Sequence record: OQ790161.1
Strand: one strand, 5' to 3'
DNA: 64,000 bases
Each line of letters opens with the position of its first letter. Position 1 is the first letter of the stretch. Below, one piece after another: positions 3,940 through 62,180 of the stretch. The position numbers and the translations under genes were made by a program. The notes beneath the pieces are model-generated. The model was not told the origin of the DNA. It saw only the letters and a list, made by a program, of their open reading frames with translations, and made no database searches.

Positions 3940-5403
3940 ATGTCTGCTTTGGAACTACCGTTCAATGTAGAGATCTTTCAGCCCGCCGAAGAACAGCTGC
4001 GTTTGCTCAAGCCTGTCACCAGCACAGACTACTACGAGAACTCCAAGGGCGATCTCCACGAGGAGGGCCTGTTCTCCATCAGCATCTTCGGGCGCATCGG
4101 CGATGAAGCACGAGATCGTCGTTTCTCCTACATTGACATCAAAACTGAAGTCTTCCACCCCATCCTCTACAACCGTCTTATCCGGTTGAAGAAACTCTAC
4201 GGCGGCATCCTCAACGGGGAGTCGTACGCAGTGTGGGATGAGGTGCGCAAGGACTTCTTCCCCGCCAACGAGCTGACCGGTCAGACCGGGTTTGCGTTCT
4301 TCTGCGAACACTGGCGCAAGATCGAGTTCAGCCGGAACAAGTCGGACGTGCGCGACCTGCGTGCCAAGCTGATCGAGAAGTATCGCAACCAGAGCATGTC
4401 CAGCAAGATCCTGGTGATCCCCGCTGGCCTGCGCGACATCGAGGTCGATGAGAACGGACGGACCAACGTCCATGAGATCAACGCCCTGTACCTGAAGTTG
4501 CTGGCGCGCGCAGCGGTGCTGCCGGACCACGACAACATCAAGAACGATCCCTCGCACAACCTGGCTCGCAAGTTGCTGCAAGCGTGCTTCAACGACATCT
4601 ACGAATTGCTGGAAGCCATGCTCTCGGGCAAGAAGGGTTTCTTCCAAGACAAGTGGTCGGCACGTAACATCACCAACTCCACCCGAAACGTGATCACCGC
4701 CATGGACACCTCCGTGGCTACGCTGGGCGCTGTCAATGCCCCACGCTTCACCGATACGGTTGTGGGTTTGTGGCAGCTGTCCAAAGCCGTGCTGCCGGTG
4801 ACCATTCACCACCTGATGAAGAACTACCTCTCGCAGGTGTTCGCCTACGGCAACCGTACGGCACGTCTGGTGGATCCGACCACGTTGGATGCAGAAGTCG
4901 TGGAAGTGTCTTCGGATGCCTACGATCGCTGGAACACCGTGGAAGGGCTGGAGAAGGTCATCACCAGCTACAAGGAACTGTCACTGCGCAACAAGCCAGT
5001 GATGATCGACGGGCGCTACTTGGCCCTCATTTATGCCCCCAAGAACCGACCAGTGTTCAAGGTCTTCCACGACATCAATGATCTGCCCGAAGGGGCTGAC
5101 CGTGCTGACGTGCGCCCCATCAACCTGATGGAGCTTCTGTACCTGTCTGGGTACAAGATCTGGAACGACCAAGTCGGTACCGTCACCCGTTACCCCATCG
5201 CAGGTGTGGGTAGCTGCTATCCAACCACGGTCTATGCCAAGACCACGGTGGTGGGTGAAGTGCGCGGTGAGCTGGATGAGAACTGGCAAGTACCGACCGA
5301 AGGGACCAGTCATCTGGCGCCCGAGTTCCCCACTTACGAGCCGCTGGCTTATCAAGACAGCCTCGTGATTCCCAGTACCCGCCTTGCGGGACTGACAGCC
5401 GAT
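3940..5403 (+). CDS. Virion RNA polymerase beta' subunit (phiKZ gp180-like), exon 1
   Basis: Beta'-like motifs (GLFSISIFGRIG, KILVIPAGLRD, TRYPI); ends ..RLAGLTAD just before the intron; the spliced product is 546 aa and restores ADFDGD. Confidence 0.9.
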
Positions 5404-5808
5404 AACCCGTAGCACGAACTACGGGTAAGTCCCGTACTGCTGTGAAGCAGTACGTGCATTTCCCTTAATTGCTGGGAACTCCTGTTAAACTCAATGGCTA
5501 CAACGTGGGACGAAAGTCCGAGCGTGAATGCTGAAAACATTGAGGTAGGGACAATCAGCAGCTGAACCCTTCTGTGACCCGGCTTTTTAGCACGAGGAGC
5601 GTGGGGAGAGTTCAACGACTATCCGGTGGTGCGGAGTACATTGCAATTGGGCAATGGAAATAGGGAAACATCTTCGAATCTGCGTCTGGGCAAAACGCTG
5701 CGAAGATGAAGATATAGTCTGGCCTGCATGGAGACATGCAGCAGTGGATCTGTAGTTGCGGCAGACACCACGCGCTTGAGGGAATACGACCACAAGCGGA
5801 ACAAAGCG
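5404..5808 (+). mobile_element. Group I self-splicing intron (IA-like), 405 nt, no ORF
   Basis: 5' exon ends in U, intron ends in G; P/Q/R/S elements AATTGCTGGGAA (5467), AATCAGCAG (5553), TTCAACGACTA (5611), AAGATATAGTC (5709); P3 TTTCCCT/AGGGAAA, P8 CATCTTCG/CGAAGATG, P9 CTGCATG-GAGA-CATGCAG; splicing is in frame. Confidence 0.93.
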
Positions 5809-5985
5809 TTCGACGGCGATACCGCCAGCTTCATCGCATACTACACCGATGCCAAGTTCGACATCGTGGATTATCTCAACACCAAGCAAGCCTTCGTGGA
5901 TCCAGTGGGTGGCATCCGGACCAGTGCAGCGGTTGATACCGTTGTGTTGTTCCTGCGCAGCTTCACGGGCAACCCCGAGGATTGA
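5809..5985 (+). CDS. Virion RNA polymerase beta' subunit, exon 2 (58 aa)
   Basis: Begins TTC GAC GGC GAT (FDGD), completing the catalytic motif; ends ..FTGNPED*. Confidence 0.9.
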   Translation, partial: FDGDTASFIAYYTDAKFDIVDYLNTKQAFVDPVGGIRTSAAVDTVVLFLRSFTGNPED

Positions 5986-7372: not shown

Positions 7373-10300
7373 ATGCACAATCCACTTGCCTATTTCACCT
7401 TGATGCCGTCGACCTTCGAGCCGACCGGGCATCATCTGAACGAGAACGGTGAAGTACCGCTGCTGACCTTCAATGGTCCGGCGCTGGAATCACTGCTCGA
7501 CACTGTGCCCCCGGACTTCAACGTGAGTCTGGAGGCCATGCCCTTTACACGCCTTACTTCCGCAAGTACGGCGTGCTGCGTGCAGTGCAGTTGGCTGCAC
7601 CGCTGCTCAACAAGCTTGCTGTGTTGGAGCTGCCCAAGGAAACCGTCCTGCATTACATGCCCGAGGACGAAACCGAAATCGGCCTGCCGCAAGACCATGC
7701 GATCTTGATCAACAACACCCGTGTGATCATGACCGAACACGTCACCCAGTTGGGTGATGACAAGGGCAACCCGCGGACCCTGCCGATCCCCTCGGCCCAG
7801 ATGAAGCGCGAGTACCATCGGCAGAACCGTCGTACCCGTGAGATGCTGCGACCGGAAACGGTCATGCGCGATGTCAACACCATCGTGGTGGAGAACTACG
7901 CGCTGCTCAGCCATCTGTATCGCTACCCCACCAACTACTTCCGCGCTTACTTCAAGTGGTGGAACATCCAAGCTGCCCTGTGGCAGCGTGTGGGTGAGAT
8001 CTCCCAGAACTACCCGCTGCGCAACCAATTCCTTCAGTGCCGCCTGCCCACCTTGCTGCCGACCATCGGTCAGCTGCGTCGTGGCGAAGGTGAGATGACC
8101 CGCAACCTGCTCGGTAGCTTCGTGCAGCCGGAGTCGCTGCTGATCCTGGAGATCTGGAAGTGGCTGGGTGAGCGTCGTGAGAACTCGGTGCTGTCCAAGT
8201 GCCCGCCTGAAGCCCTGACCAAGATGAACCTGATCTTCATTGAACAGGATCGCTGGTTGATGCTGAATCTAGGTCTGCTGGACAAGTGGCGCAAGCGCAC
8301 GCTGGAAGAAGGTGGCAACGATACCCACAAGGGCATCTTGGATCCGATCATGATCCAAAAGCGTTTCCTGCGTCTGTTGATGACGTTGATGGAAGTGCGC
8401 ACGGGCGGTGAGATCAACGAAGCACCGGCTGGTGAGATCGACACGGCGGTTGTCAATGTGGATGCACAAACGGCGCCGGGCTCGAAAGAGGATCCGGACA
8501 CCAGTATGACGGTGGCTCGCTCCGAGCCGGTCAAGCTGTCGGTGCCCACCGAAGATGGTCGCACGGCCAAGATCAAACTGACGGCCAACTTGAATCTGGA
8601 TCGTCTACCCGATGAACTGATCGAGGAAACCCCGGAGAACCAGCTCGCCATCGATGAGGCCATCACCAAGGACCTCGAAGCACTCGATGCAATCATGGCC
8701 CGGTTCCAGGAAAGCCAAGTCGAAGGTGAGGAAGACTCTCCGATCGATACCTCCACCGGCGAAGTCAGCACCATGCTCAAGTACGTGCCCAACGAGCGTT
8801 CGCTCTCGGGTAGCGTGATGGCCAAGATGGACCAGCTGGCTGATGCCGGTCTGTGTTCGGGTGCCGAGTACCGTCGCATGACGGCGCTGTCTACCGCCTA
8901 CCAGCGACTGCCCAGTCCCTTCGGCGAAGGCACCTTGGAAGACATGTCCACGATCGCACACGAAGATCTGGTCCTGTCCACCGAGTCGCAGATTCCGGAC
9001 ATGCTCACCGTGCCGGACAAGACGATGCTCAAGAGCTCGATCTTGGAATACGACAAGCAGTACCTGAACAAGATCTACCGCAAGGATCTGGTTCGTTCGG
9101 TGCTGGGCGTCCAGCATGCAGGTATCGCCGTGACCGGCTTCCAGATGGATGAGTACAAAGACGTGCTCAACCACTACGAGAAGTTTGCCATCCAGCTCAC
9201 CCCTGTGGTGGGTAAGGTCTCCACGGTTTACGCCAAGCTGCCCAAGATCAATGCCGACGGTACCTACGTCGACAACGGTTCGCGTTACCGCATGCGCAAG
9301 CAGCGTGGTGACGTGCCGATCCGTAAGCTCTCGCCTTCGCGTGTGGCGCTGACCTCGTACTACAACAAGGTCTTCATCTCGCGTTCGGAAAAGCAGATCA
9401 GCAACTATCCGGGTTGGCTCACCAACCAGATCGCTGCGATGGCCATGGACGAGGACAACGGCACGATCGACCACGCCATGTTGGCCGATGTGTCTGACAC
9501 CGAAATCCGCACCCCGCGTATCTACTCGATCTTGGCTTCGCGCTTCCGCTCGTTCCATCTGTACGAAGGCGACAACGCCTACGTCTACGAGTTCTTCTTG
9601 GACTACCATGCGCGCAAAGCGCAGTTCGGTGCCGAGCGCGTGGAGGCGATCGAGAAGGACGGTCTGTTGGTCATCGGTAAGGCACAGGCCTCCGGTAACC
9701 TGCTGGTGGTGGACAACACCAACACGATCTACGAAGCACAGGGTCTGGAACTGAAGACCTTGGGCTCGATCGAAACGATGATCGGTACGCTCTCCGGCAA
9801 GCCGCCGGCAGAGACGGCAGAGATTCGCATCTTCGGCAAGCAAGTGCCGGTGGGCCTGTTCTTGGCTTACCACTTGGGTATCACCAAGTTGTTCGAACTG
9901 CTGGGCGTGACGCCGCGTAAGGTACCCACCGGTACCCGTGCGTACATGAACGGGGACGAGCTGGCCATTCGCTTCGAAGATGAGATGTGGATCTTCCCGC
10001 AAGACCAAGGCATGCGTACGCTGATCCTGGCCGGTCTGGCCAGCTACGACAAGATCACCCGCAACTACTCCTCGCATCTGTTTGATCGCAAGGACATCTA
10101 TCTGCCGGTGCTGGAGCAATCCCGCGTTGGCGTGCGCTACTTGCGCGAGATGGATCTGCTGGTGGAACTGTTCGTGGATCCGATCACTGAGGACATCCTC
10201 AAGGAAATGGGTGAGCCTACGGACTTCATCAGTCTGGTACTGCGGGCCTGTCAGTTGCTGGAGACCGATTGGTCGCCGGCTGAGACCGACATGGCTTACA

Positions 10301-11892
10301 TGCGCATCAAGGGTTACGAACGCTTTGCCGGTGCGCTCTATGCGGAACTGGTCAAGGCCATTCGTCAGCAGCGCGCTCGTGGTTCGATTGCCAATGCCAA
10401 GATCGACATGCATCCCGATGCGGTATGGATCGGTGTGTCTCTGGATCCGGTCAAGAAGGCAGTGGAAGAATCCAACCCCGTGCACAACGCACGTGAGCGT
10501 GAGGAAGTCACCTACTCCGGTGTGGGTGGTCGTTCGGAACGTTCGATGGTCGGTCGTACCCGTGTGTATCATCCCAATGACTTGGGCGTGATCTCCGAGT
10601 CCACCAAGGATTCGGCGCAGGTGGCCATCACCACGTTCATGCCGGCAGATCCCACGCTGTTGAATGTGCGCGGTATGGCACGTCGCTTCGATCCGGAAAA
10701 GGACGGGATCACTTCGGTGATGTCGACCCCGGCTCTGTTGTCGCCGGCTGCCGATCGTGACGATCCCAAGCGCGTGAACTTCATCCCGATTCAGCACTCC
10801 TCCGGTACGTTCGCCAAGGGCTACCGTCAGACTCCGTTGCGTACGGGCTATGAGCGTGTGCTGGCACATCGCAATGACGACATGTTTGCTGCATCGGCTG
10901 ACCAAGACGGTGTGGTGACCTCGTTGGACGCAACTCGTGGCATGGTCGTGACCTACGCTGACGGTTCCACCCAATCCATCAAGGTGGGGCGTCGCTTCGG
11001 TAAGGCCGCCGGTCTGGTGTTCCCCCATCAGCTGACGGCGATGTACCAAAAGGGTCAGTCCTTCAAGAAGGGCGACATCTTGGTGTACAACGAACGCTAC
11101 TACGAACCGGACAGGCTCACCCCCGGACAGGTGGTGTGGAAGGCCGGCCTGTTGGTCAACACGGCCATCATGGAAAACCCCGATACCCTGGAAGACTCCT
11201 CGGTGATTTCAGCCCGTGTGGCTGCGGATCTGGAAACCGAAATTACCTACGTCCGCGACATCGTCGTGGCCTTTGATCAGTCCATTCATGGGCTGGTGGA
11301 AGAGGGTAGCGAGGTGGAGATCGAGAGTATCCTATGTACGATCGAGGACGCTGTGACGGCCGAGAACAGTTTGTTTGACGAGAACTCGTTGGACATGCTG
11401 CGACTGCTGGCCGCCAACACGCCGCGTGCCAAGTACAAGGGCGTCGTGGAAAAGGTGGAGGTGTTCTACCACGGCGAGATCGACGACATGTCGACTTCGT
11501 TGATGGAGATTGCAGCTGAAAGTGACCGTGACCGCAAGCGTCAAGCACGGTCGCTGCAAGAGCAGGCCATGAATGGTAAGGTGGATTCGTCCACTCGTAT
11601 CCAGTCCAAGCCCCTGCCGGCTGACCATCTGCTGATCCGCGTGTATATCACCGGCGCCGCTTCGGCGGGTGTGGGTGATAAGGCTGTCTTCGCCAGCCAG
11701 TTGAAGACGGTGGTCGGTCGCGTCTTGAATGGCGTGAACGAAACCAAGTCGGGTCTGCCGGTGGATGCAATCTTCAGCTACGCATCGATCTCCAATCGCG
11801 TCGTTCGTAGCCCTGAAATCATGGGCATCACCAACGTCCTCCTCAAACTCATCAGTAAACGCATGGTAAGTGCGTACAAGAAGGGAAAGTAA
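7373..11892 (+). CDS. Virion RNA polymerase beta subunit (phiKZ gp178-like); apparent frameshift near 7541-7546
   Basis: 1439-aa ORF 7573..11892 with beta motifs (VTYSGVGGRS, ISESTKDS, EDSSVIS, VGDKAVFASQLK). Coding-like sequence extends upstream in that frame to 7546 (YTPYFRKYG) and in another frame from ATG 7373. Confidence 0.88.
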
Positions 11893-51161: not shown

Positions 51162-52250
51162 TCAATCCAGATAGGGTCGAATGGCGTAATCGATGAGAAT
51201 GGTCAGGTCCTCATACAGATCAGAAGGCATCGAAGAACGCAAGACACTACTGCCTTCCATGTACTTCAGCCAACGCTTGATGTAGTTCAGGTATTGCTGA
51301 TTGCGTGAATTGTCCGTACTGCGATTGAACTGGACCAAGAAGGCCACCAGATTCACACGTGCCAACACGACACTCCATTGCAGCTGGGTGGAGAAGGGCA
51401 TCTCCGGGAGCCTTAGGACGTCGTGTAAATTCTCAGAGGAAACCGTAGGTATGTGAGACACCAACGTGTCAAAGTCCCACCGCTTGGGACCGGCTTGCTC
51501 CAGGAACTTATCAAGCACACGATCTACCTCCGCCGACCAGTCGGTCAGGTAGAACGGATGACGATAGGGATCCACAACCGGTCGGGTGCCGAAGTAACGG
51601 CCCATCAAGCGATTGAGGATGGCGATGTCGATTTGGCTGTCAAGCATGTTGGGCAGCGGATACGCTTGCAGGAAGTGACCGGGGGTCCGCACGGACTCAT
51701 CCAGACCACCGTACTTCAAGCGCCACATCCGGTACTGACTGGCCAGCATGGGAACATTGATCGAAATCACTGTCACACCGGGGGTAGCAGACGCGAACTG
51801 CCCATCGGCCACCGGCAGCTTGAGGGTACTCATGGGATGCCAGAGATAACGAATCGGGGCCAGCTCCTCCCAATTCTTAATCCCAGCTTCCACGTCCCAC
51901 GTATCGGTGTTGGCGACGTAGACCTCCGTTGACTGCTTGCCCAAGAAGTCACCGGGGCGAAACACCCGCCCTTTAGAAAGAGCAGAGTTCATTCCCAGGC
52001 TTTGCGTGAACAGTAGCGCGATGTCAGCGATCTTGTCATTGTAGGTAACCGCATCGAGCTTTTGGCTCACGGGGATGCTGCCCAACAGGCGCAGCAAGAA
52101 ATGCCCACCCTTGAGCATTCGAGGATTGATGCGGCGGTACTGCTTGATTCGGTCGATCGACAGCTGCAGTCCATCTCGGATCCTGCGGAAGTCGGGGAAG
52201 ATCAATCCCCCACCGTAATGGAGGGGAGACTCCTGCAACAGATGATACAT
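51162..52250 (-). CDS. Conserved core protein (phiKZ gp52-like position, 362 aa)
   Basis: GGAGG RBS before MYHLL; opposite strand between the polymerase and chmA. Confidence 0.62.
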   Translation of the reverse strand: MYHLLQESPLHYGGGLIFPDFRRIRDGLQLSIDRIKQYRRINPRMLKGGHFLLRLLGSIPVSQKLDAVTYNDKIADIALLFTQSLGMNSALSKGRVFRPGDFLGKQSTEVYVANTDTWDVEAGIKNWEELAPIRYLWHPMSTLKLPVADGQFASATPGVTVISINVPMLASQYRMWRLKYGGLDESVRTPGHFLQAYPLPNMLDSQIDIAILNRLMGRYFGTRPVVDPYRHPFYLTDWSAEVDRVLDKFLEQAGPKRWDFDTLVSHIPTVSSENLHDVLRLPEMPFSTQLQWSVVLARVNLVAFLVQFNRSTDNSRNQQYLNYIKRWLKYMEGSSVLRSSMPSDLYEDLTILIDYAIRPYLD

Positions 52251-52555
52251 GTCGCCTCCGGGCGGTGGTGTTATCGGTGCGGGGTAAAAGGGCCATATAA
52301 TTCGGGTCTTAGAGGAGCTTACGTTTTTCTTTACCGAAAAGTGCTCTATCATGTAGGGAATACGCTTCCCAGACATCCACCGCAACTGGATGTCGAAAAC
52401 GTCGAGGTATATTATCGACGGGCGTAAATAGAATAGGATTCAAAGAAATTTGGAAACTAAACTATACCCTTGACATTAGTAACGAGCCATCGATACTGGT
52501 GTTCGCGCGAACTACCCATAGAAAAATCCGTCCAATCGAAACAGAGGAATACGCA

Positions 52556-54496
52556 ATGTCCATGTCCCGTCCCGGCGACAACAACGGCAATGACAAGAAC
52601 CAGCAGGGCACCCCGAAGAGCGGCGTGTTCAGCGATTCGTTCAACCAGACCGGCAACTCGCAGAACGCCGGCGCTGCCCAGGGCAGCTCCAACACCAACC
52701 GCACCGGTGGCTCGCCGCGTGGCGTGAACCGCATCCTGTCCCAGCGCACCGGCATGGGCCGCAAGCGTCCGGCCGCCGACATCAAGGCGATGCAGGAAGC
52801 CCTGAGCCTGGAACTGGACGCGTTCAACAACAACGCCGCCCTGCCCGAAGCGCAGGACTTCAAGCTGATCATGGCGGACCGCAACCGCCTGAACAAGAAG
52901 GTCGACGCGCTGATCTGCGTGCTGCCGGTCAACCACGAAGGCTCCATCCACGCCGTCATCCACACCCTGCTGCTGGAAGACGCCAACGACGCCTACGAGC
53001 CGACCACCCTGCAGGTCGCCGGCAAGCAGTACCGCTACACCACCGCGGTGGGCGACGTCTACACCCCGGAGTTCTGGGCAACCATCGTGGACGTGGTCAC
53101 CGAGCAGAGCGGCCTGAAGGTCATCCCGTACGACGCCGGTCACCAGACCATCCCGGCTGAAGCGGACATCAAGGACAAGGACGCGATCCACAAGTTCGCC
53201 TTCTTCGCCAGCGAAGCGCTGACCCGCAACGCGCTGAGCCAGATCCTGAAGACCACCGCCGACGTGATCTCCCTGACCGACCTGGGCGACAGCGTCAACA
53301 CCACCGCCGTGATCGACTTCCGTACCGTCGACGACCAGACCGCCTCCGGCCTGCCGCTCGCCAGCGATTACGAAGTGAAGCTGCGTTACAGCGACGTGGC
53401 CGGCGGCCAGGGCACCAACCAGAGCGGCAAGGCGTTCGAGCTCGGCAGCCAGATCCCGCTGGGTGGCGCGACCGGCATCATCGACCTGTCCTACTCGCCG
53501 CCGCCGCAGGCCGGCTTCGGTCAGCAGCAGCAGACCCAGCACTACTGGGCCCGTACCGTGCTGACCCGCCTGGACACCGACCAGGACGTGATCACGCCGG
53601 AACTGCAGGGCCTGTCCCTGCTGGCTGCCACCCTGATCGGCCGCAACCTGAACTGGGCGCGCACCTGGTCGCCGCAGTTCCGCAGCCAGGACGATGTGCT
53701 CAACGACATCGGCGCCATCGGCTACGAACTGCCGGGTCCGGACGGCCAGCCGTACGGTCGCATCCCGACCAACACGGCGTCCTTCGACGACGCGGCGCTG
53801 GCGAAGCTGGTCATGACGGCCATCCACGACCGTCCGATCATCTCGCTGGACATCGAAGAGTCGGGTGAGCTGACCTGGCTGAACCGCGTGCTGCTGGACG
53901 CAGCCAACGGTTCGCAGGAAGCCGAGCAGGCCATCATCGACACGTTCGACAACCTGACCGGCGGCAACTTCAGCAAGCTGTGGACCGGCGGCCGTCTGGT
54001 CGAAGACGACAACAACCGCATCCACCTGGGTTACTTCATCGCCGATGACCTGGGCACCCGTCGTGACATCCGCAACCTGCGCTACCTGCAGGTGCTGAAC
54101 CGTTACGCCGAGCAGGATCCGCAGATGATCGTCAAGTGGCAGGACACCTTCGACAACCAGGACCTGGACCCGGAAGTCCGCCTGGCCGAGCGTGAAGACC
54201 TGATCCGCAAGATCCTGGGCCCGACCGTCCGCATCACCGGCTACGCCCGTCGCGTGTCGTTCAACCCGGACTTCCTGAACTGCGCGCTGGAAGCGGCAGC
54301 GATGGCCGGTCTGCGCATCCGTCCGGAAAACACCCTGATCGGCTTCGGCCAGACCGTCTCGCGCGGTCGCGCCGACATGTCCTCGCTGGCCTTCGGTGGC
54401 CAGGGTGGTCGTGGTGTGTTCGTGCACGGCGGCAACAACAACGCCGGCCGCTCGTTCGCACGTCCGTTCACCGGCCGTGGTCCGTTCCTGCGCTAA
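52556..54496 (+). CDS. chmA: Chimallin, phage nuclear shell protein (646 aa)
   Basis: Segments align by eye with 201phi2-1 gp105 (WART..NDIGAIG, ASFDDAALAKL, IHLGYF..RRDIRNL, ITGYARRVSFNPDFL..AGLRI); disordered N-terminus; directly upstream of nvRNAP beta'; extreme codon bias. Confidence 0.92.
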   Translation: MSMSRPGDNNGNDKNQQGTPKSGVFSDSFNQTGNSQNAGAAQGSSNTNRTGGSPRGVNRILSQRTGMGRKRPAADIKAMQEALSLELDAFNNNAALPEAQDFKLIMADRNRLNKKVDALICVLPVNHEGSIHAVIHTLLLEDANDAYEPTTLQVAGKQYRYTTAVGDVYTPEFWATIVDVVTEQSGLKVIPYDAGHQTIPAEADIKDKDAIHKFAFFASEALTRNALSQILKTTADVISLTDLGDSVNTTAVIDFRTVDDQTASGLPLASDYEVKLRYSDVAGGQGTNQSGKAFELGSQIPLGGATGIIDLSYSPPPQAGFGQQQQTQHYWARTVLTRLDTDQDVITPELQGLSLLAATLIGRNLNWARTWSPQFRSQDDVLNDIGAIGYELPGPDGQPYGRIPTNTASFDDAALAKLVMTAIHDRPIISLDIEESGELTWLNRVLLDAANGSQEAEQAIIDTFDNLTGGNFSKLWTGGRLVEDDNNRIHLGYFIADDLGTRRDIRNLRYLQVLNRYAEQDPQMIVKWQDTFDNQDLDPEVRLAEREDLIRKILGPTVRITGYARRVSFNPDFLNCALEAAAMAGLRIRPENTLIGFGQTVSRGRADMSSLAFGGQGGRGVFVHGGNNNAGRSFARPFTGRGPFLR

Positions 54497-54537
54497 GCCA
54501 TCGACGTGAGTCGATAGCTGCAGGATAGCAACTGTGA

Positions 54538-54572
54538 GAAAGGCCGCCCTTCGGGGCGGCCTTTCTTTTTGC
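54538..54572 (+). terminator. Intrinsic terminator after chmA
   Basis: GAAAGGCCGCCC-TTCG-GGGCGGCCTTTC-TTTTTGCCG. Confidence 0.8.
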
Positions 54573-54726
54573 CGTCTACGTGTAAAAAGCAACACAGAAC
54601 AGCTATGAAATGATCCGGTGTTTTGCTGAGCTGCCACCGGAGAGAACGAATCGAAGGCTCAGTGCAGAAAGGGGATGAACTATCAACGCACTACTTTCAT
54701 TTGACCCCGAGTCGATTGATCCCCCG

Positions 54727-56211
54727 TTGCGTGCTCGCAAGCGCGACGGGATTGACAAGTGTCGCAAGTTCGATGGCATTGCGATGCGACTGGTGGACCT
54801 GAACCGGGATTTCGAAACGGCCAGCAATCCGCCGGTGATCGTCAACTCCTTCAACGTGAACACCGTCGAAGACAAGCAGCTGCTGGATCGGATGATCTAC
54901 ACCTACTACGAAGGCGATAGCCTGAATGTGGTGCCGACCTGCGACTGTGGCAAAACCAAGGGCGCTGGCAAGATCGGCAGCCGTTGTCCCAAGTGCAACG
55001 GTGAAGTCCGTCCGGTCAGTGAGCAACCGCTGGAGCCGCTGCTGTGGCTGGCTCCGCCTGACGGTGTCAAGACCTTCATCAACCCCCAAGCGTGGACCAT
55101 GTTGTCCAAGGCTCTCTCGCATGGTGGGGTGAACGGTCTGGCCTGGCTGTGTGATCCTTACATGCCAGTGGGTAACGAACCCCATCGTGAGATCCGTCGT
55201 CTGATGGATCTGGGTATCGAACGTGGGATCAACAACTTCTACGACAATTTCGATGAGATCATCGAGATGCTGTTCAATGCCGGGGTGATCTCGGGCACCA
55301 GCCGTCGTCAACGCGAAGATCTCTACCAGTTCATCAAGCTCAACCGCGATCGCATCTTCACCCGCCACCTGCCGATCCCCTCGCGCATGGGGTTTGTGAC
55401 CGAGCGGTCGATTACCGGTTCGTTTGCTGATACCACGATGAAGACAGCGATCGAGGCCATTCGCACGATCTCGGCCACCGTCCATTCGCTGATCCCGCTG
55501 GACATCAAGCGACTGCAGTCGCGTACGGTAAAGGCCAACGAGTATCTGGCCGTTTACCATCAGGAGTACATGTCCGCAACGCTGACGTCCAAGCGTGGCT
55601 GGCTGCGTAAGAACGTCTTCGGTTCTCCGCTGTACTTCACCTTCCGTGCCGTGATCTCCTCGCTGTCGGAGCGCCACGAGTACGATGAGTTGCACCTGCC
55701 GTGGGGTGTGGCGGTCTCGACCTACGAGGTCCACCTCACTTCCAAGATGTTCCGCCTGAACAATCCGGATACCGGCCGGCCGTTTACTCCCAACGAAATC
55801 AAGAAGCACTTGCGCGAGCACACGCTGCGTTACAGTCCGCTGATTGATCAGTTGTTCAAGGAGCTGATCGCCGAATCCCCGCACAAGGGACTGCCGGTCC
55901 TGTTCAACCGCAATCCGTCACTGGACCGCGGTTCGATCCAGGAATTCTTCGTCACCAAGATCAATCCGGATCCGAAGATCAACGCCGTGGCCATGTCGGT
56001 CCTGACGCTGAAGGCGCCCAACGCCGACTTCGATGGCGATGCACTGAACGGCACCCCGCTGTTGTCCAACCGCTTGGAGCGTGCATTCAACGTGCTTGCT
56101 CCGCACCAAGGCGTCTTGGATCTGGACCGCCCACGTTCCATGTCCAGAAACCAAGCGATGCCGCCACCGGTGGCAAGTACCATCGCCAACTGGCTGCACG
56201 GTGGCAAGTAG
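54727..56211 (+). CDS. Non-virion RNA polymerase beta' subunit (phiKZ gp55-like), intron-less
   Basis: Zn finger CDCG..CPKC, NRNPSL, intact NADFDGD; exact start uncertain. Confidence 0.9.
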   Translation: MRARKRDGIDKCRKFDGIAMRLVDLNRDFETASNPPVIVNSFNVNTVEDKQLLDRMIYTYYEGDSLNVVPTCDCGKTKGAGKIGSRCPKCNGEVRPVSEQPLEPLLWLAPPDGVKTFINPQAWTMLSKALSHGGVNGLAWLCDPYMPVGNEPHREIRRLMDLGIERGINNFYDNFDEIIEMLFNAGVISGTSRRQREDLYQFIKLNRDRIFTRHLPIPSRMGFVTERSITGSFADTTMKTAIEAIRTISATVHSLIPLDIKRLQSRTVKANEYLAVYHQEYMSATLTSKRGWLRKNVFGSPLYFTFRAVISSLSERHEYDELHLPWGVAVSTYEVHLTSKMFRLNNPDTGRPFTPNEIKKHLREHTLRYSPLIDQLFKELIAESPHKGLPVLFNRNPSLDRGSIQEFFVTKINPDPKINAVAMSVLTLKAPNADFDGDALNGTPLLSNRLERAFNVLAPHQGVLDLDRPRSMSRNQAMPPPVASTIANWLHGGK

Positions 56212-56262
56212 TGAAGGGGCCCTTCGGGGCCTCTTGTTTTCCCTTACCTCAAGAGACACCCA

Positions 56263-56583
56263 ATGTCCGAGAACAAAGACTACAGCCGCATCCTTGCGTT
56301 GGCACTGACTCAGGTCTTGCCGATTGCCAAGCGCGCGGTGGAGGCGGATAACGCCAAGGCTGAAGCCACCGAAGAAGCCATCGCGGCCATCGTTGGTGAT
56401 GATGTCGAATCGGATGCTCAGCTGATTGAAATCAGCGCCGGCTACACGGCCGTCAATCTGGATGAAGTTCGCATCCACCGGGGCGAAGAAGCCCTGCGGC
56501 AGTTCAATACCACCGACAAGTCCGTCGTTGGTCTGGGCGAAAGCGCCCTGGATGGCGAGTTCAACATCGAGTTCGAGCTCTAA
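56263..56583 (+). CDS. Paralog array member 1 (106 aa)
   Basis: LALALTQVLPIA ... LDGEFNIEFEL. Confidence 0.75.
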   Translation: MSENKDYSRILALALTQVLPIAKRAVEADNAKAEATEEAIAAIVGDDVESDAQLIEISAGYTAVNLDEVRIHRGEEALRQFNTTDKSVVGLGESALDGEFNIEFEL

Positions 56584-56646
56584 GTCCTGTTCCACGTAAG
56601 GGTTCTACGGAACCAACCCTTTTTTCTTCCGCAATCGAGAATACTG

Positions 56647-56979
56647 ATGACCCAGAAGACCGATACCGAATTCGCCCGTGCACTGGCCCTGTCGCTGACC
56701 CAGGTCCTGCCCATCGCCAAGCGTGCCGCCCAGGCCGATGGCGTGGCCAACGCCAATGCCAACCTGACGCATCTCAATGACGTCAGCGCCAACGGCGAAT
56801 CGGATGCGTCCAACATCAAGAAGGCTCAGCTGGACAAGGACGTGGCCGCCCACCACGCCGACACCAAGCGCCTGCAGCGTGCCAGCCACCTGCTCGAGCA
56901 GTTCGACCAGACCGAGCAGCACATCCGTGAGCTGCCCGAAGACCACTTCGACGGCACCTTCGAAGTCAAGTTCGACTAA
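56647..56979 (+). CDS. Paralog array member 2 (110 aa)
   Basis: LALSLTQVLPIA ... FDGTFEVKFD. Confidence 0.78.
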   Translation: MTQKTDTEFARALALSLTQVLPIAKRAAQADGVANANANLTHLNDVSANGESDASNIKKAQLDKDVAAHHADTKRLQRASHLLEQFDQTEQHIRELPEDHFDGTFEVKFD

Positions 56980-57043
56980 GCGCCGGCATAAGCGGAGGGT
57001 CTTCGGACCCTCCGCTCCTGTGCCCCCAATCGGATTTTTCTTT

Positions 57044-57553
57044 ATGTCCACCAGCCCCTACCCCAAGATTCCCAGCCTGAGGCTATTGACCGGCGGTCTT
57101 CGCACCACGTTCAAGCCGATGCTCTCCAGTAACCCCGATCCTGAACTCCTCGTTAAGGTGCGAGTGGGACTGCAAGGGGACATCGTGACCCATGGCTACC
57201 ACATCGGCCTGCACGATGCGTTCGTCCAGAACAACCTGGATCTCACCGAGCAGGACTTCAATCACATCACCAAGATGTACTGGTTGCGCATCCGTACCCG
57301 TTTGGAGATGGAGGCATTTGCCAGACGTAGCAACTTGTGGTGGGTGTCGATCGGGCTGAAGTTGCGCCCGGATGCCATCAACTACGCCATGACGAATCAG
57401 ATAAGCCCGTGGCAACACATGGCTAACGGGGATGTGCCTGAAGATGAACTCTATCTTGAAGTGATGCGTGGTCCGGACGAATTCGTTGCCTACGCGATGG
57501 ATCATTACACCAAGCCACTTCCGCCCCTTACCTTGGTGCCGACACCCGGTTGA
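57044..57553 (+). CDS. Hypothetical protein interrupting the array (169 aa)
   Basis: ORF without the family motif. Confidence 0.6.
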   Translation: MSTSPYPKIPSLRLLTGGLRTTFKPMLSSNPDPELLVKVRVGLQGDIVTHGYHIGLHDAFVQNNLDLTEQDFNHITKMYWLRIRTRLEMEAFARRSNLWWVSIGLKLRPDAINYAMTNQISPWQHMANGDVPEDELYLEVMRGPDEFVAYAMDHYTKPLPPLTLVPTPG

Positions 57554-57567
57554 ACTAGGAGAACAAG

Positions 57568-58140
57568 ATGGACCAGTTTCTGTTGAAAACCCCTGACCCC
57601 TATCTTCGCCAAGGTGCGCTGGCCACCACCGACACGCGCGGTGATCGGGTCAAGATCAGTTTCGAGGTGGGTGGGGATTTCGTCTTCACTCATGTCCGCC
57701 CACCTTACGCCAACATCAGTCCCGCTCAAGTGGAAGAGAAAGTGGACCACGTGATCGCCAACGGTGAATCCTTGCGTGGAGTGATGGATGATTACCAGCG
57801 CGTGGAGAACTTCTCACAGGCGGTCAAGGAAACCTTGGCACCCTTGCGCGAAGAGGTCCGCGAAGCCACTTCCCGCACTGTCGAGCTGGATAACCTCACC
57901 CAGTTCTTGGGCGTGAGCCTACGTGGCGTGCTCCCCTTTGCCATTGAGAGCGTCGCACAGCGCCGCTATCAGGCAGAGGTGAATGAAGACCCCGATGCCA
58001 TGGTCAGTGCCGTCAAGGCCCACCAGCTCATCGACAGGGCCGAGGCGGCGCTTGTGGCGCTGCGTGAGACTGACCTCAACATCGACGACAAGTCCGATGA
58101 TGAGCTGGACGGTGAGTTCACCATCTTCTTTGAGGACTAG
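57568..58140 (+). CDS. Paralog array member 3 (190 aa)
   Basis: LGVSLRGVLPFA ... LDGEFTIFFED. Confidence 0.75.
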   Translation: MDQFLLKTPDPYLRQGALATTDTRGDRVKISFEVGGDFVFTHVRPPYANISPAQVEEKVDHVIANGESLRGVMDDYQRVENFSQAVKETLAPLREEVREATSRTVELDNLTQFLGVSLRGVLPFAIESVAQRRYQAEVNEDPDAMVSAVKAHQLIDRAEAALVALRETDLNIDDKSDDELDGEFTIFFED

Positions 58141-58144
58141 ACCC

Positions 58145-58615
58145 ATGTCCTACGATCCGCTGGAAAACTCACCCGCGTTGCAAACCTCCCACAAACAGTT
58201 CATGACCGCCACTGGACTTCAACAGAAGCTGTCTTTGGGCGATCGGATCATGGACTTGGTTTCGGCTGGGTTTGAGGACTGTGCCCCGGATCGGATGGAG
58301 GCTACCACCGGCTATGTGATGGTACCGGTGGCGCGTTTGGAGAGTCTGGGCATACAGATCCATGAAGAGCGCAAGCTGACTCAGTTCCTTGGAGTGGCCT
58401 TGCGTGAGGTCGTGCCCTGGGCGGGTAACGAACTCGGTACCCTCATTGAAGGTCAGGTCACTGAACAGGATCAGGCCTTAGTGAAGGAAGCACAGCAAGC
58501 AGTCACCCGCGCTGAAACGGCACTGGCTGCATTGCGCCAAACAACCTTGTTCATCGACAACACGCCCGCCAACGCGTTCGACGATGAGTTCCGAGTTACT
58601 TTTGAGGAGGAGTGA
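58145..58615 (+). CDS. Paralog array member 4 (156 aa)
   Basis: LGVALREVVPWA ... FDDEFRVTFEEE. Confidence 0.75.
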   Translation: MSYDPLENSPALQTSHKQFMTATGLQQKLSLGDRIMDLVSAGFEDCAPDRMEATTGYVMVPVARLESLGIQIHEERKLTQFLGVALREVVPWAGNELGTLIEGQVTEQDQALVKEAQQAVTRAETALAALRQTTLFIDNTPANAFDDEFRVTFEEE

Positions 58616-59154
58616 TGGACATCGATAAACAAATGGCTGCCCGCGTTTGCACGCTGGTAGCTGAAGGAGTCAGTCCGGACGTGGCCGCACTGCAAGTGAT
58701 TGGCGACGTCAATCATCCGGCCGTCAACGTGATCGAACAGCTCCAACGCACCGAAGGGCTGGATTACTCCCGCACCATCTTGAAGGTTGCCGCCAAGGGA
58801 CTGGAAGGACATCGGCTTGCCCCGGAGCCGGACTACCTCGGCTTTGACTTGGATAGCGTCCAAGAAACCCTGAGCCAGGTCTCCCGTCAGCTGGACACAG
58901 AGCGTGACCTCACTTGCGCACTGGGTGTGGCCCTGCGACAGGTACTGCCTCATGCCGAGCAGGAAGTGAACTCACTCGAAGACGATGCCGACTGCGATCG
59001 CGACAGCGGTACGGCAGAAATAGCTGCTGAAGGTCGCCGCTCCCTCCAACGCGCACGCATCGTCCTGAAGAAGCTCGACCAGACCCACCTGTCGGTACGC
59101 GACTTTAAGGACGATCATTTCGATGAGTCCTTCAACATCAAGTTCGAGGACTGA
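58615..59154 (+). CDS. Paralog array member 5 (179 aa)
   Basis: LGVALRQVLPHA ... FDESFNIKFED. Confidence 0.75.
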   Translation: MDIDKQMAARVCTLVAEGVSPDVAALQVIGDVNHPAVNVIEQLQRTEGLDYSRTILKVAAKGLEGHRLAPEPDYLGFDLDSVQETLSQVSRQLDTERDLTCALGVALRQVLPHAEQEVNSLEDDADCDRDSGTAEIAAEGRRSLQRARIVLKKLDQTHLSVRDFKDDHFDESFNIKFED

Positions 59155-59156
59155 AC

Positions 59157-59684
59157 ATGGATACCAATACGCCAGAAGCCAAGAGAATCATCGAACTGGT
59201 GGCCAAGGAACTCCCGGCACACATACGGGACTATCCTTCCTTCGTAGTGGTTGAGAAGGCTCAAGGAAAAGAAATGGCCAACTTCGCCCGTGCACTCGTG
59301 GCGACTGCGCCGGCTCAGAAGCGGACATCCGGGTTTGATCGGACCGTAGCGATCGGTGAGAACGACGTCTACAAGGCTCACACGCGAATCGACCAAGCCG
59401 TTCAGAACGAGATCAATCGACTGGGCGCCACCGTGGAGGCCTACGGGATTTACACGCAGAGTCTGGCAGTGGTACTGCGCGACGTACTTCCCATGGTGGA
59501 AGAAACGGTGGAATCCACCGGTGAACTGGGCCGTGATTTTATCGAAGCCTACCAACAGGAAAAGCGTCTTCTGCAACGTGCCAAGGCGGTACTCAAGGCG
59601 GTGGATGAAGATCCCATCCTCCATGTTCGTGACGTCTACGCCCAGGACGTCGATGAGCAATTTGACATCAAGTTTGAGGAGTAA
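59157..59684 (+). CDS. Paralog array member 6 (175 aa)
   Basis: LAVVLRDVLPMV ... VDEQFDIKFEE. Confidence 0.75.
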   Translation: MDTNTPEAKRIIELVAKELPAHIRDYPSFVVVEKAQGKEMANFARALVATAPAQKRTSGFDRTVAIGENDVYKAHTRIDQAVQNEINRLGATVEAYGIYTQSLAVVLRDVLPMVEETVESTGELGRDFIEAYQQEKRLLQRAKAVLKAVDEDPILHVRDVYAQDVDEQFDIKFEE

Positions 59685-59802
59685 CGGGATCTCAAAACTA
59701 TACCATCCTCTTGTAACCACAAGTAAAAGGTGTAGGATGTTCCCGAAGTGAAGTGGATTTTTACAGGTCTTATTAACGGTATAGATACCCAAAGGAAACC
59801 TG

Positions 59803-60423
59803 ATGGCACTTTTGATTGATGGCGATGCCATGTCGTTTCGTGCGGCGCTCTATGGCCGACCCGCTGAGACGACAGTCAATTTCCTGCAACAGCAGTTCAA
59901 CGACCCGTCCCGCGCGTTGAGCTTTGCCAACAACTCGTTCTTCGATCGTGCACGCAGCATGTTCGAGACCAACTTCAACGAAGAGGCCATGGCCAAGTAT
60001 GATTCGGTTCGCCGCAATCTGCACACGGTCTGGGACATGGACGACATCCGACCGTTGTTGACGTTGGATGCAATGCAGCAGGCCAAGCCTGTGATGCAGC
60101 GCTGGCTGATGGCCAATCCGTTCTTGCGCAACCTGCACAAGCAAGGACGTATCGAAGCCTTCGGCGATTCGTACGTGGACCACAAGAACCAAGGCATCGG
60201 TGTGGACCATTACGACTGGCGCCTGGCGCGCAACGGCTTTGCTACCTTCAATGACGAAACCGAGTGGGAAGCAACCACCTACGGTGATGAGTTGTTGGAA
60301 GGCGATGTTGAGCCGACGTTCTTGGAAAAGGTGGCTATCGACCAAACGTGGGCCGCAGCAGAAATCGAGATGCTGTTTGGCACGCGCGATGTGACCTCGC
60401 CCGAGAACAATGAGTGGGGATAA
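59803..60423 (+). CDS. Conserved core protein of the chmA block (206 aa)
   Basis: MQRWLMANP...DHYDWR pattern recalled from phiKZ-like core genes; exact ortholog number uncertain. Confidence 0.6.
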   Translation: MALLIDGDAMSFRAALYGRPAETTVNFLQQQFNDPSRALSFANNSFFDRARSMFETNFNEEAMAKYDSVRRNLHTVWDMDDIRPLLTLDAMQQAKPVMQRWLMANPFLRNLHKQGRIEAFGDSYVDHKNQGIGVDHYDWRLARNGFATFNDETEWEATTYGDELLEGDVEPTFLEKVAIDQTWAAAEIEMLFGTRDVTSPENNEWG

Positions 60424-60488
60424 GTATGTGAGCCGGGACCCTTCGGGGTCCCGGTAATCGACCGTTCTTTTTCTTTTAGGAAGTAACC

Positions 60489-60902
60489 ATGACGGACGTC
60501 GTCCCCACCCTCAGCACGGCCGGATTCGTCTCTGACGTTCCGTCCATGATTGACCGTATGCTGGCGTATTACCTCACCAGCGATTTCTCGCAGTCCAACG
60601 TGTTCTTCGGTCAAGTCGTCTCGCTGCAAAAGCAGATGCAACAGTACCAACACGATACCCTGACCCTTCAGACGCGCATCCGCGAAGAACTGACGGGTTA
60701 TTTCGGCGGGGCGTTCGATTCGGTCACGGTCAACGTGAGTACCGAGATCCCCAACCCCGATGATCCCAACCGTATCAACGTGACGGTTGAAGCCATCATT
60801 GTCAAGGACGGTAAGTCCTACAGTGTCGGCAAACTGATTGAGACCCAAAACTCGATCACCCAGAAAATCATCAACCTCAACAACGAAGGCGTCTCCGCAT
60901 GA
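60489..60902 (+). CDS. Conserved core protein (137 aa)
   Basis: VPTLSTAGFV..SDFSQSN pattern; TAGGAAG RBS. Confidence 0.6.
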   Translation: MTDVVPTLSTAGFVSDVPSMIDRMLAYYLTSDFSQSNVFFGQVVSLQKQMQQYQHDTLTLQTRIREELTGYFGGAFDSVTVNVSTEIPNPDDPNRINVTVEAIIVKDGKSYSVGKLIETQNSITQKIINLNNEGVSA

Positions 60903-61609
60903 GTTCCAAGCCCGCCAAGAAGGCAACCAAGAAGGTAGCCACCAAGACCACCGCCAAGAAAGCGCCGGTCCGCAGTGCACCGCCGAAGGGTAACACCGCA
61001 CCGAAGCCCGATCTGCTGGCCGCTGGCCTTGCCCAAGCGCAGCAGCGCCTGCAGGACCTGTCTCCCGAAGAACAGCGCAAGCAAGCCCAGGTCCTGATGG
61101 GCCGTCTGATCAGTGAAGTCTCCCGTGTCAGCGCGCAGGCTGGTTTCCTGCTCAAGACCGGCCAGACCCAGTACTCCGAAGTGACCGGTCGCCTGGACTA
61201 CCTGGACGCCTGCGTGGCCATGATCGCCGAAGCCCTGCATATCGAACTGCCCAAGCGCCTGCCGCCGCTGCTCGATGCCACCGTCGAGCTGCTGACCGAA
61301 GCCGAAGTGCCGGCAGGCGAAAACTGGGAACTGCAAGCAGTGGCCCATGCCAAGTCGCATCCGGTCTACGGCAAGATCGAAGTGGTCATCGGCGTGGGTG
61401 AAGAAGCCCGTTCCGAATCGGTGGAGCGCATGCATCCGGCCGTGGCCGCGCGCCTGAAGGAAGCCTTCGCTGCGCGCGAAGCCGCCGGCACGCTGGTGTA
61501 CGGTTACTTCTACACCGTCCGACTGCACATGGTCCATGCCGGTGCGATCGACGAGTCCAGCGTTGCGCTGGCTGACGAAGGAAACAGTGGCGATGTCCAA
61601 CAAGCCTGA
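60899..61609 (+). CDS. Hypothetical protein with Lys/Ala/Thr-rich histone-H1-like N-terminal tail (236 aa)
   Basis: MSSKPAKKATKKVATKTTAKKAP then a predicted coiled coil. Confidence 0.72.
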   Translation: MSSKPAKKATKKVATKTTAKKAPVRSAPPKGNTAPKPDLLAAGLAQAQQRLQDLSPEEQRKQAQVLMGRLISEVSRVSAQAGFLLKTGQTQYSEVTGRLDYLDACVAMIAEALHIELPKRLPPLLDATVELLTEAEVPAGENWELQAVAHAKSHPVYGKIEVVIGVGEEARSESVERMHPAVAARLKEAFAAREAAGTLVYGYFYTVRLHMVHAGAIDESSVALADEGNSGDVQQA

Positions 61610-62180
61610 TTCCCGCGCTCTCGAAGAACCGCGTCGCACCCCACCGGACGTACTGGAAGCCATGCGTGAGCTGGCTGAAGCGGACAAAGTGGAAGTGGCT
61701 CGCATGTCCGAGCCGATGTTCCGCGAACACATCCTGCCGATGCTCTCCGCACCGGCCGGTGCGCGTGTGGACCTGACGCGTTGGTTGGAAGTGGCCGGTA
61801 CGCCCCTGCGTGCCATCGATGTGGTCGATGACCATACCGGTGAGACGATCTTCCGGGTTCCGGCCCTGATGCGTACCATTCCCACGGTCGCCCAGCAGGA
61901 AGTGAACTTCAACACCATCGTAGTCGAATCGATCGCTCACGAGAACGTGCACCCGGCCGCCGCTGATCGTTACCTGTTTCAGCAGTTCTCCCGTGTCCGT
62001 ACCGGTCACACCCTGCTGGACATCCCCACGGCACGTGCGTGGAATGATATTCGCAAGCGCTATGATCTGCCCCTGATTCCGATCCCTGCCGGCGACGGTA
62101 CGTTGGAAACGGGCACCACTCCCACTGCCAGTTCCGGCCACGGCCAACTGGTTGTCGAGGATGATCAAACCGACTTCTAA
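61593..62180 (+). CDS. Conserved core protein (195 aa)
   Basis: WLEVAGTP...IDVVD..GETIFRVPAL pattern; AAGGA RBS. Confidence 0.62.
   Translation: MSNKPDSRALEEPRRTPPDVLEAMRELAEADKVEVARMSEPMFREHILPMLSAPAGARVDLTRWLEVAGTPLRAIDVVDDHTGETIFRVPALMRTIPTVAQQEVNFNTIVVESIAHENVHPAAADRYLFQQFSRVRTGHTLLDIPTARAWNDIRKRYDLPLIPIPAGDGTLETGTTPTASSGHGQLVVEDDQTDF

Follow-up and report, generated by a model that had tools for sequence, protein, structure and literature searches.

A clade-restricted family of modular acidic proteins with a shared C-terminal domain beside the chimallin gene of Xanthomonas phage RTH11

What do six small neighboring genes of Xanthomonas phage RTH11, every one of them annotated as a hypothetical protein, have in common, and what could they be doing beside the genes for the shell of the phage nucleus and for a nonvirion RNA polymerase (nvRNAP)? 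The genes, here called m1 to m6, occupy positions 56263–59684 on the + strand of a 64,000-nt stretch of DNA (the window, in whose coordinates all positions are given unless a contig is named) from the RTH11 record OQ790161, a circular record of 312,199 bp in which window position 1 corresponds approximately to position 248,001. Over bases 52000–62000 the window and that record are 100% identical. An initial annotation, made from the letters alone, had described an array of six paralogs with a constant acidic-aromatic C-terminus and variable N-terminal modules, and had proposed that they dock onto one common partner. Nucleus-forming jumbo phages are intensively studied, and most of their clade-specific genes are unexplained.

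Six acidic paralogs of one modular family

The six open reading frames match coding sequences of the GenBank record, which for m5 places the start at the ATG at 58615 and not at the GTG at 58612. As had been expected, two members, m1 (56263–56583, 106 aa, with a long hairpin) and m2 (56647–56979, 110 aa), consist of a core only, and the other four carry an additional head in front of it. Specifically, m3 (57568–58140, 190 aa) has its head at residues 1–105 and its core at residues 106–190 (nt 57883–58137), m4 (58145–58615, 156 aa) has its head at 1–73 and its core at 74–155, and m6 (59157–59684, 175 aa) has its head at 1–94 and its core at 95–175, while m5 (58615–59154, 179 aa, or 180 aa if begun at the GTG) is predicted to combine a three-helix head, a flexible linker and the core. 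All six are acidic, with isoelectric points (pI) between 4.2 (m1) and 5.4 (m2) and net charges of −6 to −17. The genes m3 to m6 are tightly packed, with gaps of 0–4 nt; the array as a whole is not the uninterrupted one first described, since a gene we call x169 (57044–57553) splits m2 from m3.

Pairwise BLASTP, with E values scaled to a database of 1e8 residues, joins all six proteins (m1–m2 1.7e-13, m3–m4 4e-10, m4–m5 2e-8, m5–m6 6e-8, m3–m5 1e-5 and m2–m5 1.5e-4), and a profile built from the core finds exactly six matches in the whole 312-kb RTH11 genome, which are m1 to m6 themselves (E 3e-35 to 9e-28); together with the coding sequences these links confirm the six paralogs. The alignment contains in every member the three motifs that had been claimed, which we write for the family as L-x-x-x-L-[RT]-x-V-[LV]-P in a first helix, R-[AG]-x-x-x-L in a second, and a terminal D-x-x-F-x-[IV]-x-F-[DE] within a C-terminal segment whose consensus is L-S-[VI]-x-x-[LI]-x-D-D-x-F-D-D-x-F-x-[IV]-x-F-[DE]. 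The core columns invariant in all six are L10, L14, V17, P19, R53, L58, D77, F80 and F84, and across 40 sequences of the family conservation reaches at least 90% at L10, L14 and P19, 100% at R53 and D77, 93% at A54, and 95% at L58, F80 and F84. The heads of m3 to m6, measured at 73–105 aa, show no significant similarity to one another. A full-length BLAST alignment of m5 and m6 does reach into their heads, yet the heads alone give an E value of 0.16, and we treat them as unrelated.

To define the extent of the family, its profile was searched against 1.84 billion representative proteins and returned 41 matches, 32 of them below 1e-10. One match, P0040, is a 911-aa repeat protein and a low-complexity false positive, and its removal left 40 true clusters of a significant family. 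The domain is C-terminal in all true matches, followed by 0–8 mostly acidic residues in 43 of 45 proteins and by 25 residues in the other two, and the heads that precede it measure 0–248 residues and fall into at least 17 mutually unrelated groups. By tblastn over 50,697 phage records, the family was found only in RTH11 and in vB_XciM_LucasX, which alone among the other GenBank phages resembles RTH11 at the nucleotide level (75% across chmA and the RNA polymerase gene), and whole-genome profile searches of phiKZ and Xoo-sp14 detected no member. The chimallin protein, ChmA, of carriers is 55–67% identical to that of RTH11, and that of phiKZ and Xoo-sp14 is 25–27% identical.

In LucasX the same profile finds two full copies, LUCX_62 and LUCX_65, and one remnant with an internal stop, LUCX_64, compared with six copies in RTH11. 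These hypothetical proteins, none of them annotated or studied, and the metagenomic proteins are true homologs (profile E 1e-31 to 1e-10) that lie in the same genomic slot, with LUCX_65 bearing a 6-residue extension after the terminal motif. The remnant LUCX_64 (L002 13735–13860) is 41 aa long and retains no more than the last part of helix 2 with the tail motif, and its profile match runs upstream through a TAG codon.

A maximum-likelihood tree of 45 cores places five of the RTH11 paralogs in separate, well-supported subfamilies with orthologs from other phages: m1 with L010_104; m2 with L010_116 and LUCX_62; m3 with P0006 and L010_180, where the m3-type core carries a different head; m5 with L010_179 and P0004; and m6 with L010_121, P0024 and P0034. 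The tree leaves m4 unresolved. Because these subfamilies have orthologs in other phages, the duplications predate the divergence of the phages. Judged by these comparisons, m1 to m6 are six anciently diverged members of one family confined to the RTH11/LucasX clade. Our literature search found no papers on RTH11 and none connecting chimallin to the acidic tail motif, and the LucasX paper is silent on these genes; the hairpin-tail family, as we refer to it, is previously undescribed and is defined here for the RTH11/LucasX chimallivirus clade.

Predicted fold of the constant domain

Given an alignment of 40 sequences, AlphaFold2 models the m5 core with a mean predicted local distance difference test score (pLDDT) of 96.1 and a predicted template modeling score (pTM) of 0.80. 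The model consists of two helices (residues 2–35 and 38–62) and a 24-residue non-helical tail in a confident extended state (pLDDT 86–97), in which no beta-strand is predicted. An independent BFVD model of LUCX_65 shares this predicted fold and superposes on the core, tail included, with a template modeling (TM) score of 0.97 and a root-mean-square deviation of 0.6 Å over 85 residues. The conservation profile comprises a broad hydrophobic face on helix 1 (residues 6–21), a single a/d stripe on helix 2 (residues 40–61) and seven conserved hydrophobic positions in the tail (66, 68, 71, 76, 80, 82 and 84). Conservation is poor in the distal half of the hairpin, whose length varies; m1 and m2 have insertions of about 20 residues there. 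A simple covariation analysis recovers the antiparallel register (pairs 11–61, 9–57, 24–43, 22–40 and 26–39) and also links the tail to the base of the hairpin in some pairs (57–78, 5–79 and 15–66). In the full-length m5 model (pLDDT 88), head helices at residues 4–17, 22–29 and 36–64 are followed by a linker at 65–79 with a pLDDT of 57–62 and then by the core, and the pTM of 0.56 is as expected for two independently moving domains.

We read these models as a domain of about 85 aa that is predicted, with high confidence, to fold on its own from two antiparallel helices and an extended C-terminal segment. Since AlphaFold2 gives the tail a confident extended state, the aromatic-acidic end would belong to the fold, being no free peptide but the third element in a small domain that caps itself. 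The tail would pack on the base of the hairpin, where the invariant R53 of helix 2 and the invariant D77 of the tail could plausibly form a salt bridge; the seven hydrophobic tail positions and the R53/D77 pair suit such intramolecular packing. The constant end with variable heads put forward in the initial annotation is therefore modular as described, but the models make the constant part more than a docking end, namely a domain that would fold by itself with its tail confidently placed. Its further suggestion that docking might proceed by beta-strand addition is not supported by the AlphaFold2 model or the BFVD model of LUCX_65, in which the tail is predicted to be ordered within the fold and to form no strand. 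Docking onto a partner such as the shell, nvRNAP or a host hub survives only in a weaker form, in which the folded domain instead of a free strand would make the contact.

The family had not been recognized from its sequence, and we likewise found no characterized domain that matches it in Pfam, PHROGs, PADLOC, the PDB or the structure libraries. Pfam, PHROGs and PADLOC scans of m1 to m6, x169 and 33 full-length relatives gave nothing recurring below E 0.01, and when the family profile, x169 and the four heads were run against PDB sequences, only chance matches came back, such as a PsbY transmembrane helix (E 0.29) and MDHAR (E 0.03). When the core was compared by Foldseek and VIA-align with the PDB, BFVD, AFDB clusters and the ESM Atlas, the predicted domain matched, besides its homolog LUCX_65, no entry beyond generic alpha-hairpins; the best of these cover residues 1–66 with E values of 0.7–1.2 and a Z score of 7.4, inside the tool's stated noise range for helical models. 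The full-length m5 model had no Foldseek match with E < 0.9, and neither m5 nor x169 drew a match in an ESM Atlas feature search. In that search the m3 head (57568–57882) obtained a score of 0.90, with 182 shared features, against DUF1366 phage proteins, an unverified lead with no hidden Markov model support.

Likeness to known families was also considered. WXG100/Esx proteins are alpha-hairpins of about 100 aa that occur in tandem paralog pairs, to which m1 and m2 may be compared, and their hydrophobic/acidic C-terminal tail is functionally important; EsxB is among the weak fold matches to the core (E 7.8), no better than other hairpins. We rejected membership in this family, as there is no Pfam match at E ≤ 1, no WXG in the aligned loop and no type VII secretion gene nearby, and the tail is predicted to be ordered. 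An acidic tip of the single-stranded DNA-binding protein (SSB) type, with a disordered linker, D-D-D-I-P-F and a terminal Phe, was rejected as well: the family ends in D, E or L, often with acidic runs added, and again the tail is predicted to be ordered. Helix-turn-helix heads in m5 and m6 were the third candidate set aside, the m5 head being three-helical in the model, yet without a Pfam match and without a Foldseek match at E < 0.9.

A variable slot, its turnover and its other elements

The array does lie next to chmA and the nvRNAP gene, as first described. The left part of the surrounding conserved block is formed by chmA (52556–54496, + strand), a GenBank coding sequence for the phage-nucleus shell protein chimallin (PF25677, E 1.9e-52), and by the intronless gene for the N-terminal subunit of nvRNAP beta' (54727–56211, + strand), a homolog of phiKZ gp55 (PF00623, E 4.8e-9; phrog_2987, E 2.7e-153) that is the left border of the slot. 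The right border is a 206-aa homolog of phiKZ gp59 (59803–60423, + strand; phrog_3254), a widespread chimallivirus gene that we found in 190 phage records, and an SbcD gene lies beyond it among the neighbors of the array. The window also holds a gene annotated as tubulin, presumably a PhuZ homolog, and further genes annotated as RNA polymerase beta subunit. By this gene content RTH11 is a nucleus-forming jumbo phage, a chimallivirus, since chimallin, an nvRNAP subunit and the tubulin-annotated gene are all present in the window.

We read 13 independent contexts of the family: LucasX, 11 distinct metagenomic contigs (L003–L011 and L014–L016, with L004–L006 representing one phage) and a close relative of RTH11 (L019/L020). 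Wherever the flank suffices, the gene order is DNA polymerase, a reverse-strand 362-aa gene, chmA, nvRNAP beta', the slot, the gp59 homolog and later SbcD, and the family genes lie between the nvRNAP beta' and gp59 homologs in every such locus. The slot contains six copies in RTH11, L010 and L019, four in L014, two and a remnant in LucasX, two in L004, L009, L015 and L016, and one in L003 and L011, a range of 1–6 that never reaches 0 among the clade contexts examined. The initial annotation had taken the array for an insertion into a conserved block. The flanks are indeed conserved, but in phiKZ the same interval is filled by gp57, gp58 and gp58.1 and in Xoo-sp14 by two other small genes (212/213), which share with the family their position between the gp55 and gp59 homologs and their small size and show no homology to it or to x169 with all HMMER filters off. 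Slot content is thus unrelated across the three chimallivirus lineages read (the RTH11/LucasX clade, phiKZ and Xoo-sp14), and on gene order and sequence comparison the array occupies a variable slot and is not a unique insertion. In L003 the slot also includes an R2K-type ATP-grasp gene (11064–11828; PF14243/PF18299, phrog_7313), which indicates that unrelated cargo can enter the interval.

Comparison with related phages gives a view of how the slot changes. Between RTH11 and L010, whose ChmA is 67% identical, m1, m2 and m5 are 72–80% identical in amino acid sequence, like core genes; the m3 position retains its core subfamily with a different head, and m4 is replaced. L019 is a very close relative, with amino acid identities of 97% for ChmA and 99.2% for RNA polymerase and a synonymous divergence (dS) of 0.11–0.14. 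Against this phage, m2 (96% amino acid identity, dS 0.07) and m3 (97%, dS 0.35) are the most similar members, followed by m1 (88%, dS 0.65), x169 (80%, dS 0.74), m5 (69%, dS 1.05) and m4 (56%, dS 1.5). Nucleotide identity is 92–99% in the flanks and 31–64% in m4, and is back to 99% exactly at 59684. At the m6 position, L019 (6134–6307) has kept the m6 head as a 57-aa stub, with the core replaced by a member of a different subfamily. The ratio of nonsynonymous to synonymous divergence (dN/dS) is 0.06–0.46 throughout, over a dS range of 0.07–1.7. Such a mosaic combined with low dN/dS is a signature of cassette exchange with purifying selection, and from these alignments we conclude that heads and whole cassettes are exchanged among co-circulating phages by recombination, with each allele under purifying selection. 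We regard it as virtually certain that the family is real, modular and clade-restricted, consists of old paralogs, undergoes recombinational turnover and occupies a fixed slot.

The right recombination boundary of the array coincides with a conserved intergenic element, GGATCTCAAAACTATACCATCC (59686–59712, + strand), which can also be written GGATCT-AAAACTATACC. As GGATCTnAAAACTATACCATCC it immediately follows the stop of a family gene in RTH11, L010 (10737–10760), LucasX (L002 13862–13885) and L004 (7356–7380), and a shorter form, AAACTATACCCTTGACA, is found upstream of chmA at 52458–52475. Exact AAACTATACC sites number only 4 in the RTH11 genome, all of them intergenic and 55–100 nt upstream of + strand genes, and the element is a promoter candidate on this sequence evidence. 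The motif AACTATACC was rejected as a general early promoter because only 4 exact copies exist genome-wide, all intergenic and upstream of + strand genes. In a search of sequencing runs only metagenomes matched, with 5–11% of words, and no infection RNA-seq was among them.

Several hairpins punctuate the same region. A GC-rich, terminator-like stem-loop with a CTTCGG loop and a T-rich tail follows the nvRNAP beta' gene (56214–56245, + strand), stem-loops with T-runs follow m1 (56597–56630, + strand) and m2 (56990–57043, + strand; GCGGAGGGTCTTCGGACCCTCCGC), and GC stem-loops with T-runs, mostly with CTTCGG loops, also follow chmA (54540–54572) and the gp59 homolog (60432–60478). The array is downstream of chmA and parted from it by terminator-like hairpins, and the series suggests graded read-through or RNA-stabilizing hairpins. 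The 169-aa product of x169 (+ strand) is unrelated to m1 to m6 and belongs to a second slot-resident family, whose members (150–170 aa) adjoin hairpin-tail genes in LucasX (LUCX_63), L003, L004, L008, L010, L014, L016 and L019; L009 shows a weak match (E 1e-3) and the L011 and L015 slots show none. Searches of Pfam, PHROGs and the PDB gave no match to x169, few residues are invariant across its family (P10, G42, G45, L98 and W99), and it may be a partner of the hairpin-tail family.

Some observations concern the flanking genes themselves. The RTH11 chimallin, read directly from its translation, is rich in G/N/S/Q over a long N-terminal stretch and rich in Arg/Gly at its C-terminal end. A group I intron (Rfam RF00028, 55–63 bits) interrupts the nvRNAP beta' gene close to the NADFDGD motif in LucasX (L002 12152–12524) and L003 (7948–8218), and L003 additionally has an HNH endonuclease open reading frame at 8300–9292. 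Judged by its gene order, phiKZ (L012) has the same split layout, as gp55, the HNH gene gp56 and gp56.1. The RTH11 window has a group I intron at 5418–5741 (RF00028, 68.9 bits, E 2e-15), which lies between a coding sequence annotated RNA polymerase beta subunit (3940–5412) and a 210-nt open reading frame (5776–5985) that is probably the second exon of that gene.

Functional readings of the hairpin-tail family

The reading we prefer, tentatively and at somewhat less than even confidence, is that the six proteins are clade-specific accessory proteins in which one shared handle domain is joined to exchangeable heads, probably for host interaction, a mechanism that we infer. The constant domain would serve as a common handle that self-associates or binds one conserved partner, the heads would supply diversified specificities, and the proteins would act as accessory factors, probably in host takeover or counter-defence. 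A role in host interaction or counter-defence is indicated by the acidity, the cassette turnover and the variable copy number. A parallel is offered by the lineage-specific tandem families of small jumbo-phage proteins, which are likewise restricted to one phage group, diverged and plausibly a host-interaction repertoire; the present family differs from them in being modular, in its 1–6 copies and in being tied to one slot beside chmA and nvRNAP. Several points weigh against the accessory reading and the fold it builds on. No clade member examined lacks the family, and a copy usually stands immediately ahead of the gp59 homolog, which would fit a clade-essential role too, and the core-like conservation of m1, m2 and m5 between RTH11 and L010 is unusual for arms-race genes; the persistence and the conservation both keep a clade-essential role in play. 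The covariation signal is weak because it draws on only 40 related sequences, and the packing of the tail is a monomer prediction. A segment whose real packing is between subunits may still receive a confident conformation from AlphaFold.

A clade-essential role would make the family a structural or assembly factor that works with the gp59 homolog or x169, with the extra copies as subfunctionalized duplicates. This would account for its presence in every clade genome and contig, for a last member that in most cases adjoins the conserved element and the gp59 homolog, for the low dN/dS and for the co-residence of the x169 family in most slots. We nevertheless consider it rather unlikely, given that copy number varies from 1 to 6, that near-identical phages differ by swapped heads and by truncated or replaced members, that x169 is absent from L011 and L015, and that the gp59 homolog occurs in 190 phage records, yet outside the clade the family is absent by tblastn (GenBank phages) and by profile (phiKZ and Xoo-sp14). 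Unlikely, though slightly less so, is the proposal of adaptors for the shell or the polymerase. Their constant domain would dock the heads onto one phage structure, for instance nvRNAP, the import machinery or the chimallin lattice, and the tail might come free for strand addition. The position beside chmA and nvRNAP in every genome, the constant end with variable heads, the retention of one copy or more by all clade members and the strand-like alternation of F-x-I-x-F all agree with it. However, the tail is predicted to be ordered and without a strand, the ChmA termini are dissimilar to the motif, and the chmA–gp55–slot–gp59 synteny holds across the chimallivirus lineages read despite unrelated slot content, which implies that proximity to chmA and nvRNAP is inherited from the slot and is not specific. 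Published work on import into the phage nucleus also argues for recognition surfaces and not for terminal signals (10.1101/2024.03.21.585822).

A narrower claim, that the 85-aa hairpin-tail domain is a folded addressing tag taking the heads to one phage structure (the chimallin shell, an import gate or nvRNAP), seems to us improbable. Encapsulin cargo-loading peptides and microcompartment encapsulation peptides follow a like logic, with a constant C-terminal element, diverse cargo and an adjacent shell gene, and EncB hairpins are among the weak fold matches to the core (E 2.8); but those tags are short peptides behind disordered linkers, whereas the constant element here is predicted to be a folded domain. 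The strong negative charge of all six proteins invites comparison with DNA mimics, and the hairpin-tail domain might be a decoy that mimics nucleic acid or the acidic tail of a partner and blocks DNA-binding proteins of the host, such as restriction enzymes, nucleoid proteins or repair factors, with the heads adding targets. The acid-rich tail, often lengthened in relatives by D/E runs, and a cassette turnover typical of host-interaction loci are consistent with such decoys. They strike us as doubtful, since the most conserved residues are hydrophobic or structural-looking with no conserved acidic surface pattern, no known mimic in the libraries searched is similar in sequence or fold, and a nucleus-forming phage already shields its own DNA from the host. 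Hardly credible, finally, is the view that these are decaying or selfish duplicates without function. The 41-aa remnant LUCX_64 and the 57-aa stub in L019 are what it would expect, but the selection data largely refute it: each member has a dN/dS within 0.06–0.46, orthologs persist in phages that share just 55–67% identity in ChmA, and all six reading frames are intact.

The hairpin-tail locus is a compact and testable case, with one confidently predicted domain, at least 17 heads and a sharp-edged recombination hot spot beside the shell and polymerase genes. Should the handle bind a phage or host partner, it would offer a route to that partner and might itself serve as a tag, with the heads amounting to a catalogue of effector modules. 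Were it only an oligomerization scaffold, the locus would still document the turnover of accessory cassettes inside an otherwise rigid chimallivirus core block. If the domain does prove to be an addressing module, the phage nucleus would gain its first described modular targeting domain, one whose head cassettes are shuffled by recombination.

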